A stretch of 64,000 nucleotides of DNA, taken from sequence record ON568341.1; one strand, given 5' to 3'. The notes under the pieces are model-generated. The model saw only the letters and a program-made list of their open reading frames with translations. It made no database searches and was not told the DNA's origin. Below, piece by piece: positions 13,981 through 45,226 of this stretch. The position numbers and the translations under genes were made by a program. Numbering within the stretch: position 1 is the stretch's first letter; each line of letters opens with the position of its first letter.

Positions 13981-14007
13981 AAAAAGGAGCCACATGGCTC
14001 CTTTTTT
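13981..14007. terminator. Bidirectional terminator
   Basis: aaaaaggagcc-acat-ggctccttttt between convergent transcription units. Confidence 0.8.
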
Positions 14008-14281
14008 ATGTTTTTACGTAATATGTATAGACAATTATGTAGTTTGATTTTGCGAATCATATACATAGTACAAAAACCTTCAACACTTGCTTCTTCATCT
14101 TTCAATTTAATGAAGAACGTATCATCTCTTAGATTATTAAAATATATAGTTTACAGAAAATAACTTCTCACTATTAATTTTAGCACCTGTAATTTCGATA
14201 CCATCAATAGAAAAAGGTTAATGCAATTATACTTCACGAAGGAAAGTGCATGAAAATTATCATGCACTATATTATTAAAAT

Positions 14282-16183
14282 TTACGCACTGATTGTTACA
14301 GTTGCAGTATCTGTTTTATTACCATCAGCAGTAGCCACTGTAATGACTACAGAACCTTCTTCTAGAGCAGTTACTAATCCCTCATCACTAATAGATACTT
14401 TAGTAGGTTCATCTGCACTATAAGTTACTGATTTGTTAGTTGCGTTAGATGGAAGAACTTCTGGAACTAGTTGAACTGTTTTAGTACCTGATAGTGAAAG
14501 TTCAGTAGTTTTAGGTGTTAAACTAACACTGGATACAGGAACTGGAATATTAACAGTAATAACACCTTGACCTGTTTTACCACTTCCATCAGCAGCAGTT
14601 GCGATAATGTTTGCAGTACCATTAGTTAGTGCAGTTACAATACCAGTACTAGCATCAACTTTTGCTACAGCAGGTTCACTAGAAGACCATGTTACAGATT
14701 TATTAGTTGCGTTAGATGGAAGAACTTCAGCAGCCATTGCTTGAGTTGCTTTAACAGCAGTCAATGTTTTAGTTGCTGGAGTAACATTAATAGATGCTAC
14801 AGGAACTGGAATATTAACAGTTACCACGCAAACTTTAGTAAATCCACCATCAGATGTGGTTGCTGTAATATTTGCAGTACCGTTTGCAACAGCAGTGATT
14901 AACCCAGTTGGACTTACCGTTGCGACACCCTCAGCAGAAGTAGTGTATGAAATATCTTTACGACGAGCGTTATCTGGAATAACAGATGCAGTTAATTGTT
15001 GAGTAGCACCTACCGAAGTTAGGGTTGCGGTCAACGGAGTCATATTAATACCAGTTACTGGGATCGTTACATCAATCACTGATTCAGCAGTTTTAGCACC
15101 ATCATCAGTGGTAACAGTAATAGTTGTAGTACCGTTATCAACCGAAGTTACTAGACCAGTATTACTAACTTTTGCTACGTCTGGATATGAAGAAACATAT
15201 GAAACTGCTTTATTGGATGCAGTTGCAGGAGCAACGGTTGTTTCTAATTGTTTAGTATCACCTAATGTTGAGAATGTATAAGTACTAGGAGTCATAGTGA
15301 CACCAGATACCGGTGTTTTCACAGTGATAGTAGTAGTATCAGTTTTAGCACCATCTTCGGTTGTTGCTGTAATCACCACTGTACCGTTAGCAACACCAGT
15401 TACTAGACCAGAAGTAGGGTTAACGGTTGCTACATCAGGTGTTGCTGAAGACCATGTAACGTTTTTATTAGTTGCATCATCAGGAGATACTGTAGCCGTT
15501 AATTGTTGAGTACCGCCAACGTTAATTGTTGCAGTTTTAGGAGAAACAATAACACCACTAACTGGAGTTGTTACGGTAAATGCACAAACATCGGTGAAAC
15601 CACCATCATGAGTAGTAACTGTTACATTTGCATTACCATTAGCACGGGCAATTGCTAAACCAGTTTCAGCATCAACTTCAACTATTGTTGGAGCAGAGGA
15701 ACTATAACTTACTGTTTTATCATTTGCATAATCTGGATCAATTGTAGCTGATAGCTGTTGTGTACTACCAACTTTAAGTGCTACAACTTTAGGTGAAATA
15801 ATAACACCATCAACTGGAGTAGTATAATCACGTTTAACCACACGACCATTGTTCAATTTAATAATACGACCCATATAAAGAGTAGTATATCCCTTACTAA
15901 TCCCATCATCTACATAAATCATGAATGAATTGTCTTGAACCATATTAATTGCGTCTACTGGTTTAACGGAATTTGGAATGTCGATACCACGGGTATCATA
16001 CCAACACATGGAAACTTTGTAATAGATATCACCATTATCATTTATGAGATCATAAACGTTACTGGAACGTTGACGGTTAATATATAAAGTTTCGGTTAAC
16101 ACCTTACCATCGATTTTAGCGACAGAAACTTTAATACCACCAATACCAAATGGCAATTTACCTTCACTAGATATTGCTTTCAT
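14282..16183 (-). CDS. Virion Ig-like (Big_2) repeat protein, Hoc/decoration- or tail-associated
   Basis: Six tandem repeats of about 85 aa (PV.GV..SP...QL.A.V.P..A.NK.V.WSS...VA.V...GLVT....G...IT.TT.DG); preceded by a TATAAATA late promoter. Confidence 0.85.
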   Translation of the reverse strand: MKAISSEGKLPFGIGGIKVSVAKIDGKVLTETLYINRQRSSNVYDLINDNGDIYYKVSMCWYDTRGIDIPNSVKPVDAINMVQDNSFMIYVDDGISKGYTTLYMGRIIKLNNGRVVKRDYTTPVDGVIISPKVVALKVGSTQQLSATIDPDYANDKTVSYSSSAPTIVEVDAETGLAIARANGNANVTVTTHDGGFTDVCAFTVTTPVSGVIVSPKTATINVGGTQQLTATVSPDDATNKNVTWSSATPDVATVNPTSGLVTGVANGTVVITATTEDGAKTDTTTITVKTPVSGVTMTPSTYTFSTLGDTKQLETTVAPATASNKAVSYVSSYPDVAKVSNTGLVTSVDNGTTTITVTTDDGAKTAESVIDVTIPVTGINMTPLTATLTSVGATQQLTASVIPDNARRKDISYTTSAEGVATVSPTGLITAVANGTANITATTSDGGFTKVCVVTVNIPVPVASINVTPATKTLTAVKATQAMAAEVLPSNATNKSVTWSSSEPAVAKVDASTGIVTALTNGTANIIATAADGSGKTGQGVITVNIPVPVSSVSLTPKTTELSLSGTKTVQLVPEVLPSNATNKSVTYSADEPTKVSISDEGLVTALEEGSVVITVATADGNKTDTATVTISA

Positions 16184-16219
16184 ATACTTTCCTTTATAAA
16201 TTGTATTGTATTGTTATAT

Positions 16220-16227
16220 TATTTATA
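16220..16227 (-). promoter_or_regulatory. T4-like late promoter TATAAATA
   Basis: Exact TATAAATA on the - strand, 37 nt upstream of the Ig-protein start. Confidence 0.75.
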
Positions 16228-16251
16228 TTATAACAAAATTATTTTAGTATT

Positions 16252-16276
16252 AAAAAAGGAGTTCTAATGCTCCTTT
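16252..16276 (-). terminator. Terminator for leftward transcription
   Basis: aaaggag/ctccttt stem with the U-run on the - strand. Confidence 0.55.
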
Positions 16277-16493
16277 AAAATATAAAGGAACATACTGTGT
16301 AAATCTGGTTTGGTCAGGTTAATCTTTCAGAGAGAAGGAAGTAGTGAATGACATTTTATCATTAAAATCATCTCCTTATCTTTAAAATGGAATTGTAAAC
16401 TGCCTCTTAATATGATACCATAGTTCAAATGGTAAATCAATGAACTTAACAAAAAAAACTTGATACTACAGTCATAATTGTTCAGTTTTGTGC

Positions 16494-16522
16494 TTGACAT
16501 AATTAATCAATTATTGTACTAT
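16494..16522 (+). promoter_or_regulatory. Sigma70 promoter
   Basis: TTGACA-17-TACTAT. Confidence 0.75.
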
Positions 16523-16557
16523 TAATAATGTTCCTTAACTCAAATCCGAGGTAATTA

Positions 16558-42215: not shown

Positions 42216-42827
42216 ATGAACAAATATCATGTTTATTATACAACAAAGTTATCCCTTCTTGATGAATTAAATCACCGAAGTACTAAGATGAAACGTTATA
42301 CTTTAAATGGTATTACTTTTCGATATTTCCCACAAAAAGTCCTTACTTTTGTCAAGAATCCAAAATGCGTGGCATGTGGGATTGAAGCCACTGAAGTACG
42401 CATTGAACGTACATTTAGTTCTGATCCAGTTTATGGTAAACCACATTTAAATGTATATGCGGTATGTGGTCTTTATGAAGTGTTGATGACAGTTGATCAC
42501 AACCATCTGGCATCGAAGGGTGGTTGTGATTTAGAGTCAAACTTTAATACTATGTGCTCCAAATGCAATCAACTACGTTCTAATAAAACCGAAACAGTTG
42601 ATGAGTTTCTTGAGAAAGTTAAAGATCGTAATCTTCTCCAAGAACATATGAATAAATTCTTTAACGTACAAAAAAAGAAAAATAACATTGACAAGTCGAA
42701 ACTACTAGAAGAACGTAGGTTACGTCAAGAATTATGGGAAACAGACCATCTATGGCATGTTCGAGAATTTGGTCGTCATATGAAAGCTTTGAAAAAAGAA
42801 CAGAAGAAATTGAATAAACATGATTGA
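42216..42827 (+). CDS. HNH endonuclease
   Basis: CVACG...TVDH....SKGG....N...MCSKCN. Confidence 0.8.
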   Translation: MNKYHVYYTTKLSLLDELNHRSTKMKRYTLNGITFRYFPQKVLTFVKNPKCVACGIEATEVRIERTFSSDPVYGKPHLNVYAVCGLYEVLMTVDHNHLASKGGCDLESNFNTMCSKCNQLRSNKTETVDEFLEKVKDRNLLQEHMNKFFNVQKKKNNIDKSKLLEERRLRQELWETDHLWHVREFGRHMKALKKEQKKLNKHD

Positions 42828-43237: not shown

Positions 43238-43636
43238 ATGCTTAAAGAATTAGATTTTTCAAACTTAGAAATTATCAGTGCTGTAAAAAACATTTCCGAT
43301 ATGGGTGATGAGAAAGCAGTTCTTGTTACTATTACTTTTGTAAAAGAAAAAGATAGCTATAGCCATTTAACGGGTATTGAAGAACTAATTCATAAAACCA
43401 ATCTTGAGAATGATGGTAAACTCATCAAGCTTCAGGCTTCCTATACGCAAAAAACGTCAAATTTTATAGACCTAAATAATGTAGTCAAGGTGGTATACAA
43501 TCATCCTGAACACACATATAGGAATACGTCAAGAAATGAAAATGTTGCTAACGATTCGAATATTATCGAAGATGTTGAATTCATAAACACAATTTTTGAT
43601 CGTTGTTCTAAGGATTTAAAAAAAGTATACATGTAA
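43238..43636 (+). CDS. Hypothetical protein
   Basis: Abuts the upstream stop codon. Confidence 0.65.
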   Translation: MLKELDFSNLEIISAVKNISDMGDEKAVLVTITFVKEKDSYSHLTGIEELIHKTNLENDGKLIKLQASYTQKTSNFIDLNNVVKVVYNHPEHTYRNTSRNENVANDSNIIEDVEFINTIFDRCSKDLKKVYM

Positions 43637-43637
43637 T

Positions 43638-43665
43638 GGGACATTATATGTTCCAATGATATAAT
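43638..43665 (+). promoter_or_regulatory. Extended -10 promoter overlapping a hairpin
   Basis: GGGACA-16-TATAAT with TG at 43657-43658. Confidence 0.65.
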
Positions 43666-43941
43666 GTATATAGAAAATGACAACGGACATTGAAAAATGG
43701 ACACTGAGAACCTACTTCTCTTGAAAATGTAAAGGATAGATGAGCTTTACCGTTGTAGCGAACAGCAGAAGAAACCTGTTAGAGTACTGGCATTCAAACA
43801 AACACGATATAAGACCACGAATCACGGCGACACGGCTGTATAAAGAACTCCGATAAGCATACAGAGAGTTCCTAGATAGATGTATAAGGTTCGCACCTTA
43901 CCAGATTTGCTAAGGGAGTTCAAGAATTGCGGACGCATTTT

Positions 43942-44123
43942 TACAAGAAAGTTGCGTCCAAAATTTGAGAACAAGTACTACTTTGATCGAATAGAGTTAG
44001 TACTGAGTGCTGTTGATGAAAAGACCAGCGACCGTTGCATATGACTGCGATAGAGAGAAACCGAGCAACCCGCTTTCGCTCTCTAATTTTTGGTACAAGA
44101 AAGATCCGTCCAAAATTTGAGAA
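43942..44123 (+). repeat. 30-nt direct repeat pair (28/30 identical)
   Basis: tacaagaaagttgcgtccaaaatttgagaa (43942-43971) and tacaagaaagatccgtccaaaatttgagaa (44094-44123). Confidence 0.9.
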
Positions 44124-44160
44124 ATTCGCAATTCGATAATATCCGATGCCATCATCGTCA

Positions 44161-44185
44161 AGAGAGACTTAATTGTCTCTTTTTT
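44161..44185 (+). terminator. Rho-independent terminator
   Basis: agagac-ttaatt-gtctct followed by a T-run. Confidence 0.7.
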
Positions 44186-44325
44186 ATTACCTTCATTCCC
44201 CTGCGGGGGGATGTAATAGTCCTCAACAAATCCCGTCAAGTTTTTAAAGTACATTATCATTTTTAGAAGGAACTAGTTTACGAAGTAAACGCAGTGACTT
44301 CTTGAGTTACGAGAGAACGAAGTGA

Positions 44326-44754
44326 ATGAGTAACACAACGAAAATATCCGATAAATCTGAATTAACACAAATGTTATTCAAAGAATATTTTGAGTTTCAG
44401 ATAAAAGACGAACATCAATTACCACAGCAATATTTGAAAAGAATTAAAGATCCGTCAATAATTACTAAAGAAACAAATTTTTATAATAGTATTTTTGATT
44501 TCGTTAAATCAGTTCATACAACAAGACCTATTGTAGTTTTGTTTTTTGATAAATCTATTCCTTTAGTAGTTCCTGAAAATGTATTTTTTATTTCAGAAAC
44601 TGATTTAAATAACCAAAGTACTGTAAGTAGATTAAGAAATTGCTTACTTGTAGTATGTGATTCTTCATTATATAATAACAGAATACTATGGGATAGAAGT
44701 AAACGCAATGCAATTGCAGAAATGAATCCTGAAGTTACATTTATTATTAACTAA
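44326..44754 (+). CDS. Hypothetical protein
   Basis: 142-aa ORF. Confidence 0.65.
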   Translation: MSNTTKISDKSELTQMLFKEYFEFQIKDEHQLPQQYLKRIKDPSIITKETNFYNSIFDFVKSVHTTRPIVVLFFDKSIPLVVPENVFFISETDLNNQSTVSRLRNCLLVVCDSSLYNNRILWDRSKRNAIAEMNPEVTFIIN

Positions 44755-44785: not shown

Positions 44786-45226
44786 ATGGAAAATATTGAA
44801 AATTTAAGACATGTTATGGATTTTATCATTGATACTGAAGAAGATAATGCTTATGATGAAATCTTACTAACTTTTATTGAAAATAGTTTGTTTTTAAGTT
44901 CTGCTGCACATAGCTGGCATTTACAAAGCCGTTTCTACACAAAGCATCTTCAATTGGATGAACTATACAAAGAGTTACCAGAGTACGTTGATGCATTTGT
45001 TGAGGGTATAATGAATACTCGTGGGGCATTACAGGTAGGTACTGGTAACAGTTATCGATTTACCCACATTGAGGATTGTGTTCCAATTCTTGAAGAGTAT
45101 TCTAGCCAATGTAAAGCAATTCATGCTATGCTCGAAGAGGCAGAAGACTATGGCAGTACTAACACACTAGAAGATATTATGAGTTTTGTTGATGGTGTGC
45201 TTTACAAACTTAAAGTTTTACAATAA
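44786..45226 (+). CDS. Dps/ferritin-like protein
   Basis: AHSWHLQS.FYTKHLQLDELY..L....DAFVE ferroxidase-centre pattern. Confidence 0.75.
   Translation: MENIENLRHVMDFIIDTEEDNAYDEILLTFIENSLFLSSAAHSWHLQSRFYTKHLQLDELYKELPEYVDAFVEGIMNTRGALQVGTGNSYRFTHIEDCVPILEEYSSQCKAIHAMLEEAEDYGSTNTLEDIMSFVDGVLYKLKVLQ

Follow-up and report, generated by a model that had tools for sequence, protein, structure and literature searches.

The genome of Escherichia phage UE-S1 (ON568341.1, genus Asteriusvirus, 358 kb), a member of the RaK2-like jumbo myoviruses, contains between the genes UES1_462 and UES1_464 a gap whose sole annotation in GenBank is a 'hypothetical protein', UES1_463, on the minus strand, and the question raised by this locus is whether the gap encodes a small protein or something else. 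The stretch analysed here (the window) comprises 64,000 nucleotides (nt) of that record, and its positions correspond to those of ON568341.1 minus 186000; window positions 43600-44330 are 100% identical to the UE-S1 sequence. A preliminary description of the window had proposed, from the letters alone, that the gap holds a stand-alone unit for a large structured phage non-coding RNA (ncRNA). This central proposal is borne out: given the compensatory changes in 64 relatives, the conserved promoter and the lack of a conserved open reading frame (ORF), we regard it as nearly certain that 43637-44325 is a gene for a structured ncRNA. The unit would be read from the plus strand and would measure about 570 nt up to a repeat, named R2, or about 650 nt with its 3' extension; the earlier estimate of about 515 nt was too short, as the 3' boundary had been misplaced.

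The 689 nt of this unit contain no plus-strand ORF of at least 60 amino acids (aa). It is not, as previously claimed, the largest stretch of the window without a long plus-strand ORF; positions 13981-16557 form a larger one, which is explained by a minus-strand gene of 633 aa (14282-16183) in surroundings otherwise on the plus strand. The enrichment in G+C noticed earlier is real, with values of 0.40-0.42 in the unit and 0.24-0.33 in the flanks in place of the approximately 45% and 30% originally given, and the unit folds more stably than its shuffled versions (z = -3.4 on the plus strand and -2.9 on the minus strand). A blastn search, recommended in the preliminary description together with an Rfam search, matched 72 phage records, all of them RaK2-like jumbo phages of Escherichia, Salmonella, Klebsiella, Cronobacter, Erwinia, Yersinia, Serratia, Pectobacterium and Xanthomonas, with three to five matching places per genome and an identity of about 70% even across genera. 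The matches always fall in an unannotated gap of 700-900 nt or in a gap with tiny dubious ORFs, and in every locus fetched a profile search identified a full-length homologue of 500-560 nt.

The comparison of these homologues indicates that selection acts on RNA structure. RNAalifold, applied to an alignment of 34 distinct members with a mean column identity of 57%, predicted 67 base pairs, 42 of which show compensatory double changes, and a mutual-information scan with average-product correction on 64 distinct members recovered the same helices independently, together with four pseudoknots, PKA to PKD. A curated model of 81 pairs in window coordinates, scored on the 64 members, has 95% canonical cells and double changes in 57 pairs, and four of its pairings are of the pseudoknot or long-range type. 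In six controls, obtained by displacing the 3' partner by 1-3 nt, 38-43% of the cells were canonical, and only one or two pairs were both more than 85% canonical and covarying, against 51 in the model. Since G-U cells (365) far outnumber A-C cells (37) in the 64-member model, the plus strand is the strand under selection. Furthermore, about 80 positions, mostly in junctions and loops, are invariant among the 34 members, whose pairwise identity goes down to about 51% (mean about 65%). As modelled, the plus-strand RNA is a compact multi-domain fold with at least four pseudoknot or long-range pairings. The clearest case of these is PKC, in which AUCGAA (43986-91) pairs with UUCGAU (44132-37): each of the six pairs is 100% canonical, 24-42 double changes were counted in five of them, and this contact could be made either inside one molecule or between two.

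Protein coding is the alternative suggested by the annotation itself. According to this explanation, the gap would hold one or more small proteins, encoded by plus-strand ORFs of 34-58 aa or by UES1_463, and the 30-nt direct repeat of the unit would be a duplicated peptide motif. ORFs are in fact present on the plus strand (43740-43856, 43880-44044, 44035-44139 and 44090-44266) and on the minus strand (43997-44260, annotated in GenBank as UES1_463, 87 aa, and lying wholly inside the RNA gene), and both copies of the repeat would read ...RK(L/I)RPKFE... in frame; in several related records, the gap has been filled with two to six tiny 'hypothetical proteins'. However, all six small ORFs (38, 54, 34 and 58 aa on the plus strand, 50 aa and UES1_463 on the minus strand) are interrupted by stops or frameshifts in orthologues that are about 80-87% identical, the indels are not multiples of three, the substitutions counted by position modulo 3 (20/26/38 and 32/41/42) reveal no clear codon periodicity, and the variation within helices is compensatory. 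UES1_463 is most likely a mis-called ORF, because its frame is broken in the closest orthologues (loci L003 and L002), and the coding explanation, which retains a negligible probability, is effectively refuted. The relatives are conserved, covariation is present and the pattern of change is not codon-like; all three points had been left to be checked in the preliminary description.

On the plus strand, the promoter occupies positions 43637-43665, with a TGGGAC box (43637-42), a TG dinucleotide (43657-58) and the -10 hexamer TATAAT (43660-65), the last two being the extended -10 element recognised earlier; a -35-like GGGACA is found 16 nt upstream of the extended -10. The family consensus is TGaAAC, a spacer of about 17 nt and TGTGnTATAAT, in which TGnTATAAT is kept in 60 of the 64 members and the box upstream of it is TGAAAC or TGGGAC. 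Judged from these motifs, this is a sigma-70 type promoter conserved across the family, and transcription would start near 43672. The family promoter belongs to the same class as the 'TGAAACG' promoters of phages CBB and GAP32, which are located mainly upstream of DNA-synthesis genes (PMC5259590). A literature search found no transcriptome for RaK2-like phages. The promoter is followed by a 5' leader (43672-43709) that differs in length and sequence among members and is missing in one prophage subgroup; in the window copy it contains a small hairpin (CAUU 43688-91 with AAUG 43696-99). No consistent pairing of the leader with the 3' end was found across the family. As regards candidates for such a pairing, a 29-nt imperfect inverted repeat is present in the window copy, and the 3-bp closing helix GAC:GUC predicted by RNAalifold is unsupported, as the leader-R2 duplexes of the family are no more stable than those of shuffled sequences (mean z -0.3).

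Downstream of the leader, the 5' domain (43710-43916) consists of the helices H1 (43712-22/43732-39), H2 (43744-46/43757-59), H3 (43762-66/43835-39), H4 (43776-79/43824-27), H5 (43845-50/43866-71) and H6 (43886-89/43896-99) and of the pseudoknots PKA (43856-59/43908-11) and PKB (43830-32/43881-83); most of its pairs are 94-100% canonical, with two to four pair types each. H1 has the conserved loop GAAAAUGUA, and the invariant AAGGGAG (43912-18) stands at the end of the domain. Tandem G-A pairs on the flanks of H2 resemble, by inference only, a k-turn or k-junction. A hammerhead ribozyme, suggested by GAUGAG...CGAA around H1, H2 and H3, was discarded: its core strands would be CUGANGA and GAAA, whereas the strands at the junction were found to be AUGA (4 nt) and GA (2 nt), and H1, H2 and H3 form no closed three-way junction; in addition, no Rfam match to it was found on 43500-44400. 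The core domain (43974-44137), with the near-invariant GACCGUUG and CAACCCGC, contains the AGUACU stems (43974-79/43999-44004), H9 (43980-85/43992-97), H10 (44008-12/44026-30) and the helices H11 (44046-50/44126-30), H12 (44053-57/44073-77) and H13 (44080-83/44119-22), these three with strong covariation, together with the long-range pairings PKC, described above, and PKD (GUUGC 44034-38 with GCAAC 44065-69). A tagagag/ctctcta stem proposed earlier for this region is particular to the window copy, and covariation favours H12 and H13 in its place.

Two optional modules are inserted in this architecture. H7 (43918-21/43969-72, within 43917-43973; mutual information of 0.8-1.0 in the aligned columns of 43919-22) encloses module 1, formed by the stem GGACGC/GCGTCC (43931-36/43954-59), which had already been noticed in the preliminary description, and by the first repeat copy (43942-43971); this module is absent in several members (e.g., loci L004-L006). 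H13 encloses module 2, with the second repeat copy at 44094-44123. The two copies, starting at 43942 and 44094, are identical at 28 of 30 positions, as had been reported; the repeat is part of the optional module, has the consensus UACAAUAUAGAUCCGUCCAAAAUUUGA and occurs zero, one or two times per member. Since the module is placed in the terminal loops of the two hairpins H7 and H13, it is a peripheral structural insertion and not the guide-like repeat unit that had been suggested.

The core is followed by the hairpin X:R1 (44138-44161), in which the segment X pairs with the 3' strand R1 (44150-44161), and by an optional internal terminator-like hairpin with U6 (44162-44185; 7 bp, -9.4 kcal/mol), which was not picked up by a consensus terminator scan. 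In the preliminary description this terminator was the 3' bracket of the unit. A length-and-T-run test detects such an insert in only 27 of the 64 members, its stems varying in sequence with complementarity kept, and both sequence and RNA-level pairing are maintained downstream. There, the 3' tail (44186-44240) contains H16 (44197-201/44206-10), a G-run with AUG (44206-44214), the motif CCUCAAC and R2 (44229-44239). In H16, which corresponds to the CCCC/GGGG hairpin at 44197-44210 of the earlier list, only C-to-U changes occur, opposite an invariant G; this is an RNA-level, plus-strand signature, which argues that the functional RNA extends past 44185. The sequence of five or six G followed by an A-rich tract is invariant in all 64 members. 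A leader peptide starting after the G-run was considered and rejected, because its length (1 to at least 28 codons), frame and presence all vary.

R1 and R2 are direct repeats of the form AYC(A)NCGUCAR, and in all 64 members they are the same at every variable position. For example, T or C at 44152 and 44231 (T in 44 members, C in 20) is always matched in both repeats, as is C or T at 44156 and 44234, and changes common to both are CUUCAAG in RaK2, UUGUCAG in L146, GUGUCA in L100, L105 and L141, CGACAA in one Serratia element and ACGAAG in a divergent subfamily, in which the stem of X:R1 has changed from the GACG:CGUC of the main family to UUCG:CGAA. R1 pairs locally with X, and no complementary partner of R2 was found. 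This covariation by identity points to a common partner of the two repeats, to a competition of R2 with R1 for X, or to a need for mutual homology.

The 3' extension (44241-44325) of the window copy is closed by AGAAG 44265-69/CUUCU 44298-302, enclosing a hairpin (44276-81/44285-90) that had been listed previously as GTTTAC/GTAAAC at 44276-44290, and ends with the motif AACGAAGUGA (44316-25) directly 5' of the ATG of the ORF 44326-44754. Across members, these extensions measure 85-130 nt and carry further covarying hairpins and the motifs GAAUUGAG and ACGAAGUGA, and in other members a covarying UUGAC-hairpin-GGCAA is found. They run either up to the next gene's start codon or to a bidirectional terminator, the latter in the second copy of UE-S1, and some paralogues stop at their own terminator, without a co-directional gene downstream. 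A pairing of CCUCAAC with the GAAUUGAG motif was examined by eye and dismissed, because the variants do not compensate.

The family is multi-copy, and the distribution of its copies is informative. No second copy was detected in the 64-kb window by self-BLAST and profile searches, nor in UE-S1 1-50 kb; the second copy of UE-S1 lies at ON568341.1 311318-311874, between the genes for endonuclease VII and the baseplate hub. In the record of this phage, positions 311350-311507 are marked as an unexplained 'repeat_region' and a terminator is annotated at 312028-312055; a transcript of the second copy that stopped there would measure about 720 nt. A profile search of the whole genome of phage EC22.5-2, 99% identical at the window locus, identified four full-length copies on the plus strand, at 89.9, 143.3, 223.1 and 333.2 kb, the second of which is the window copy; four or five copies are found in GAP32, CBB, BF and several metagenomic jumbo contigs of 355-371 kb, and a strict motif scan gave three in Yen9-04 and two in RaK2. 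The RNA family is carried by all RaK2-like jumbo phages examined, with four or five copies in the genomes examined in full. Copies of the same genome never group in a maximum-likelihood tree (four label changes per four copies in each of nine genomes), and well-supported clades each contain one copy from several genera, a pattern which implies that the paralogues are older than the split of the genera. They are thus ancient, occupy conserved positions and have escaped homogenisation. In the tree, the window copy and the endonuclease VII/hub copy of Asteriusvirus are sisters.

The loci of the jumbo phages differ in the gene neighbourhood around the RNA copies. The RaK2 copy (NC_019526.1, about 191.3 kb) lies directly downstream of the RNA polymerase sigma-factor gene ORF244, and ORF245 is annotated over the RNA. 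In one paralogue group (L165:6819-7811; L144, L148 and L089), an ADP-ribosylglycohydrolase gene is directly 3' (PF03747, E = 3e-70); among the neighbouring proteins it was the only recurring hit, but it was judged coincidental, its other occurrence being an unrelated one in a host chromosome. A divergent subfamily, on metagenomic large-phage contigs (L206, L210, L218, L239, L244, L255 and L256), matches the family in the 3' half of the RNA only, from AAGGGAG on; its 5' half is different, and its R1 and R2 read ACC(A)ACGAAG. The gene content of these contigs gave no clue; one of them encodes a tRNA-His guanylyltransferase-like protein.

Outside the jumbo phages, the RNA is found in bacterial integrated elements. 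A pattern of 23 conserved bases (GACCGTTG ... CAACCCGC) was used in place of a looser one, whose 120 stretches were mostly due to chance, and matched 58 stretches in IMG/VR, 89 in metagenomes and eight in bacterial genomes, almost all of which proved to be complete or partial members of the family; in a set of 50,697 phage records, matches were confined to about 71 jumbo phages, with no isolated temperate phage, and no family match was found in a plasmid collection. The eight bacterial assemblies, each with a single full-length copy, belong to Serratia fonticola, a second Serratia species, Enterobacter chinensis, Silvania, Buttiauxella and two Enterobacteriaceae, the eighth being a metagenome-assembled genome labelled Clostridium (2.8-kb contig). 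The usual gene order is recombinase, RNA, convergent cI-like repressor, cro-like gene and a 286-aa protein, the recombinase being a tyrosine integrase in some elements and a large serine recombinase in others, and PHROG and Pfam scans of the elements revealed only recombinase, ParB-like, cI and cro-like proteins and unknowns. Furthermore, two of 5,426 complete Escherichia coli genomes have a single, partly matching copy (64% of the query); in E. coli LR-29-1 (NZ_AP027515.1, about 3479142-3479515) the copy is in an island of about 10 kb beside ffs. This island also holds an integrase disrupted by IS3, DUF4326, DUF488 and dual-OB genes and a resolvase. The bacterial copies form one clade of the tree, and their nearest phage relatives are of one paralogue type (L038 and the copy of Xanthomonas phage XaC1, with 77% identity). 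Given the unrelated contexts of the RNA, the cassette moves as promoter plus RNA, and it has moved between jumbo phages and integrated elements of their hosts.

The RNA was compared with known families and systems. Rfam 15, which covers GOLLD, ROOL, OLE, HEARO, raiA, RNase P, transfer-messenger RNA (tmRNA), 6S, CsrB, introns, riboswitches and T-box, gave nothing at the gathering threshold for the whole window, only snoRNA and miRNA noise (14-22 bits, with cut-offs of 45-65) for 43500-44400 at E up to 10, and only an unrelated TPP riboswitch and STnc450 for the eight bacterial loci at E up to 0.1, so that no Rfam family could be assigned; ARAGORN found 0 tRNA or tmRNA genes in the window. The earlier impression by eye that the RNA is not a tRNA, a tmRNA or RNase P agrees with these searches. 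A CsrB-like GGA sponge and a T-loop or tRNA-like 3' end were also weighed from the sequence and none fits. Full-text searches of the literature found no mention of the RNA family, nor was one found in the genome papers on UE-S1, fEgEco12, RaK2 and CBB, and that it constitutes a new family of large structured phage RNA is strongly supported. In PA5oct, a jumbo phage related to the RaK2 group, four untranslated RNAs supported by RNA-seq, ncRNA001-004 (236-619 nt), have been reported, two of these long ncRNAs being highly expressed throughout infection (PMC7318152). By nhmmer, ncRNA001 and ncRNA002 have no detectable similarity to the family described here. To our knowledge, neither a structure nor a family has been reported for the PA5oct RNAs.

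How, then, does this RNA work? Taken as a whole, the observations are best explained by a self-contained large ncRNA gene that may well act in trans, an explanation to which we would give an even chance, and the RNA presumably acts through its three-dimensional fold rather than as a message. As to the mode of action, we rank first, tentatively and at slightly under an even chance, a trans-acting structured RNA, be it a binder, a decoy, a scaffold or a ribozyme. This ranking is due to the fact that the unit is self-contained, its contexts are unrelated and it sometimes has its own terminator with nothing downstream, and that the RNA is far more elaborate than the known cis elements. Host sigma-70 RNA polymerase would transcribe the RNA from the TGAAAC-box/extended -10 promoter, a stable RNA would be made early and in quantity, and its task, comparable to that of the large 'ornate' RNAs GOLLD and ROOL, would be to bind or sequester a partner, either a protein or a nucleic acid, or to catalyse a reaction, with R1 and R2 as possible partner-recognition or switching sites and the optional hairpin modules as putative peripheral stabilisers. 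The family is in the same size class as GOLLD and ROOL (500-800 nt), with many helices, pseudoknots and conserved junction nucleotides, and like them it forms stand-alone phage or prophage genes without a consistently linked protein gene; a preprint describes the self-assembly of GOLLD and ROOL into cages (bioRxiv 10.1101/2024.12.08.627333). Unlike these RNAs, to which it has no sequence or structure match in Rfam 15 and which are found in Firmicutes or rumen phages, it is carried by jumbo phages of Enterobacterales and Xanthomonas, has no tRNA genes nearby, occurs as four or five diverged paralogues per genome and has a pair of 3' repeats covarying by identity. The trans-acting mode is the weakest step of this explanation, and several points weigh against it. 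No partner protein gene is consistently adjacent to the RNA copies; the paralogues show no concerted evolution and keep their position across genera; the copy number rises with genome size, from one in elements of at most a few tens of kb to four or five in 350 kb; and this pattern of position and copy number is at least as easily reconciled with a position-bound, cis role as with action in trans. The internal terminator-like hairpin would cut off the conserved 3' tail unless read through, and, since in several paralogues the RNA runs into the next start codon, a leader function is possible for those copies. Finally, promoter, strand, expression, RNA ends and stability are all deduced from the sequence.

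A position-bound role would be explained if each copy were an RNA-primed replication origin similar to that of ColE1 RNA II or to oriF, oriG and oriE of T4, an explanation that had been offered as an alternative, in the form of an R-loop origin, in the preliminary description and that we rank second and consider unlikely. A persistent RNA-DNA hybrid, seeded by the G-run at the C-run of the template strand, would be processed by RNase H and extended by the phage replisome; a phage factor co-evolving with R1 and R2 would use them as iteron-like sites, and the integrated elements would keep a copy in order to be replicated by the jumbo phage. The phage encodes RNase HI, the G5-6 and A-rich tract is invariant, R1 and R2 co-vary by identity as iterons do, and promoters of this class have been reported upstream of DNA-synthesis genes in CBB and GAP32 (PMC5259590). 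The four copies of an Asteriusvirus genome, about 53-110 kb apart on one strand, and the four or five in other genera, ancient, position-bound, not homogenised and more numerous in larger replicons, recall T4, in which at least five dispersed transcript-primed origins are known and oriE depends on an early sigma-70 promoter (PMC3016281); as in T4 and ColE1, the transcript would be an RNA of about 550 nt with a constitutive or early promoter and a G-rich segment near its 3' end, and the genome is T4-related. On the other hand, priming is not known to need anything near the at least four pseudoknots and about 80 invariant residues of this RNA, the fold being much more elaborate and conserved than that of ColE1 RNA II or the T4 transcripts and lacking a unit similar to the antisense RNA I; the RNA-level constraint continues past the putative hybrid site, through the 3' tail and into the covarying hairpins of the 3' extension; and the copies are homologous, whereas the T4 origins share no common sequence motif. 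The distance between R1 and R2 is variable, over about 30 nt, and there is a difference of 1 nt between the two half-sites, neither of which is typical of iterons, and the position between recombinase and cI in the integrated elements would be unusual for an origin. A turn of the GC skew is found at only one of the four copies; the skew follows the direction of transcription and the test is therefore uninformative. Less probable still, and ranked third, is a cis-acting leader, i.e., a riboswitch-like attenuator, an antiterminator similar to HK022 put or an RNA-RNA immunity circuit similar to P4 CI and P1 C4, in which X would pair alternately with the repeated targets R1 and R2 on the same transcript. 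The succession of promoter, fold, X:R1, terminator hairpin with U6, Shine-Dalgarno-like G-run with AUG and R2 does resemble an expression platform, the window RNA abuts the ATG at 44326, and in one paralogue group a covarying hairpin holding GGAG ends 3-4 nt before the start codon. P4 CI and P1-P7 C4 are RNAs of about 70-80 nt processed from leaders; in these systems, one segment is likewise complementary to two repeats on the same transcript, segment and repeats change together between lineages as X, R1 and R2 do here, and the RNA of the integrated elements similarly adjoins the repressor region, next to cI. The family differs from them in its length of about 600 nt, its large independent fold, the order X-R1-R2 in place of R-X-R and the lack of a common downstream operon. 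In fact, the downstream genes differ in every paralogue group, and the endonuclease VII/hub copy is followed by a bidirectional terminator and convergent genes, which leaves it nothing to regulate; more than half of the members have no terminator hairpin by the length-and-T-run test, and the short ORF after the G-run is as variable as described above. Neither a consistent co-directional gene nor a platform in all members was found, and no ligand or tRNA-type signature was found.

A mobile element or intron, whether an ORF-less group I or II intron, a guide RNA derived from an insertion sequence or a repeat similar to a miniature inverted-repeat transposable element, is very improbable. The multiple copies, the direct repeats R1 and R2, the recombinases adjoining the bacterial copies and a gene for an HNH endonuclease 800 nt upstream in the window would all suit it. 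Against it, no intron, HEARO or other model of Rfam matches at E up to 10; every copy sits between genes, under its own promoter, and interrupts none; the copies are ancient syntenic paralogues and not recent insertions; and the neighbouring recombinases belong to two unrelated classes and are missing from the phage copies. As with coding, this explanation is essentially excluded.

The meaning of the family could be wider, and it is conceivable, if rather doubtful, that it represents a new class of large functional RNA with a biochemistry of its own, either a ribozyme or self-assembling machine, of which jumbo phages would need several specialised copies, or a structured primer RNA that would define a multi-origin replication system, captured in either case by small integrated elements of the hosts to parasitise or block jumbo phages, with R1/R2 as the specificity determinant; such a capture would amount to an arms race at the RNA level. 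Among the RNAs of bacteria and phages, no more than about a dozen classes are known that are both large (>400 nt) and intricately folded; each of them has either brought new biochemistry, as in RNase P, group I and II introns and the HEARO/IscB guides, or remained a puzzle, as in GOLLD, ROOL, OLE and raiA. The ancient, position-bound paralogues and their capture by integrated elements suggest a central function in jumbo phages and a possible RNA-based conflict between phage and island. In the genomes of about 70 sequenced jumbo phages, about 700 nt at each of four loci are at present blank or mis-annotated as hypothetical proteins. One member of the group, phage Sharanji, is listed on E. coli MG1655, a laboratory host of the K-12 type, which makes the family unusually easy to study.

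Among the genes surrounding the RNA in the window, all on the plus strand, 42216-42827 encodes the HNH endonuclease mentioned above (203 aa), two genes (about 800 nt) upstream of the RNA; it has weak Pfam matches to HNH and HNH_5, bears the annotation HNH in phage A4 and may be a homing endonuclease, and no such linkage exists at the other copies of the RNA. The immediate neighbours are a DUF7325 protein of 132 aa (43238-43636) and a DUF5856/ferritin-like protein of 146 aa (44786-45226), the latter annotated as 'structural protein' in phages A4 and 121Q.

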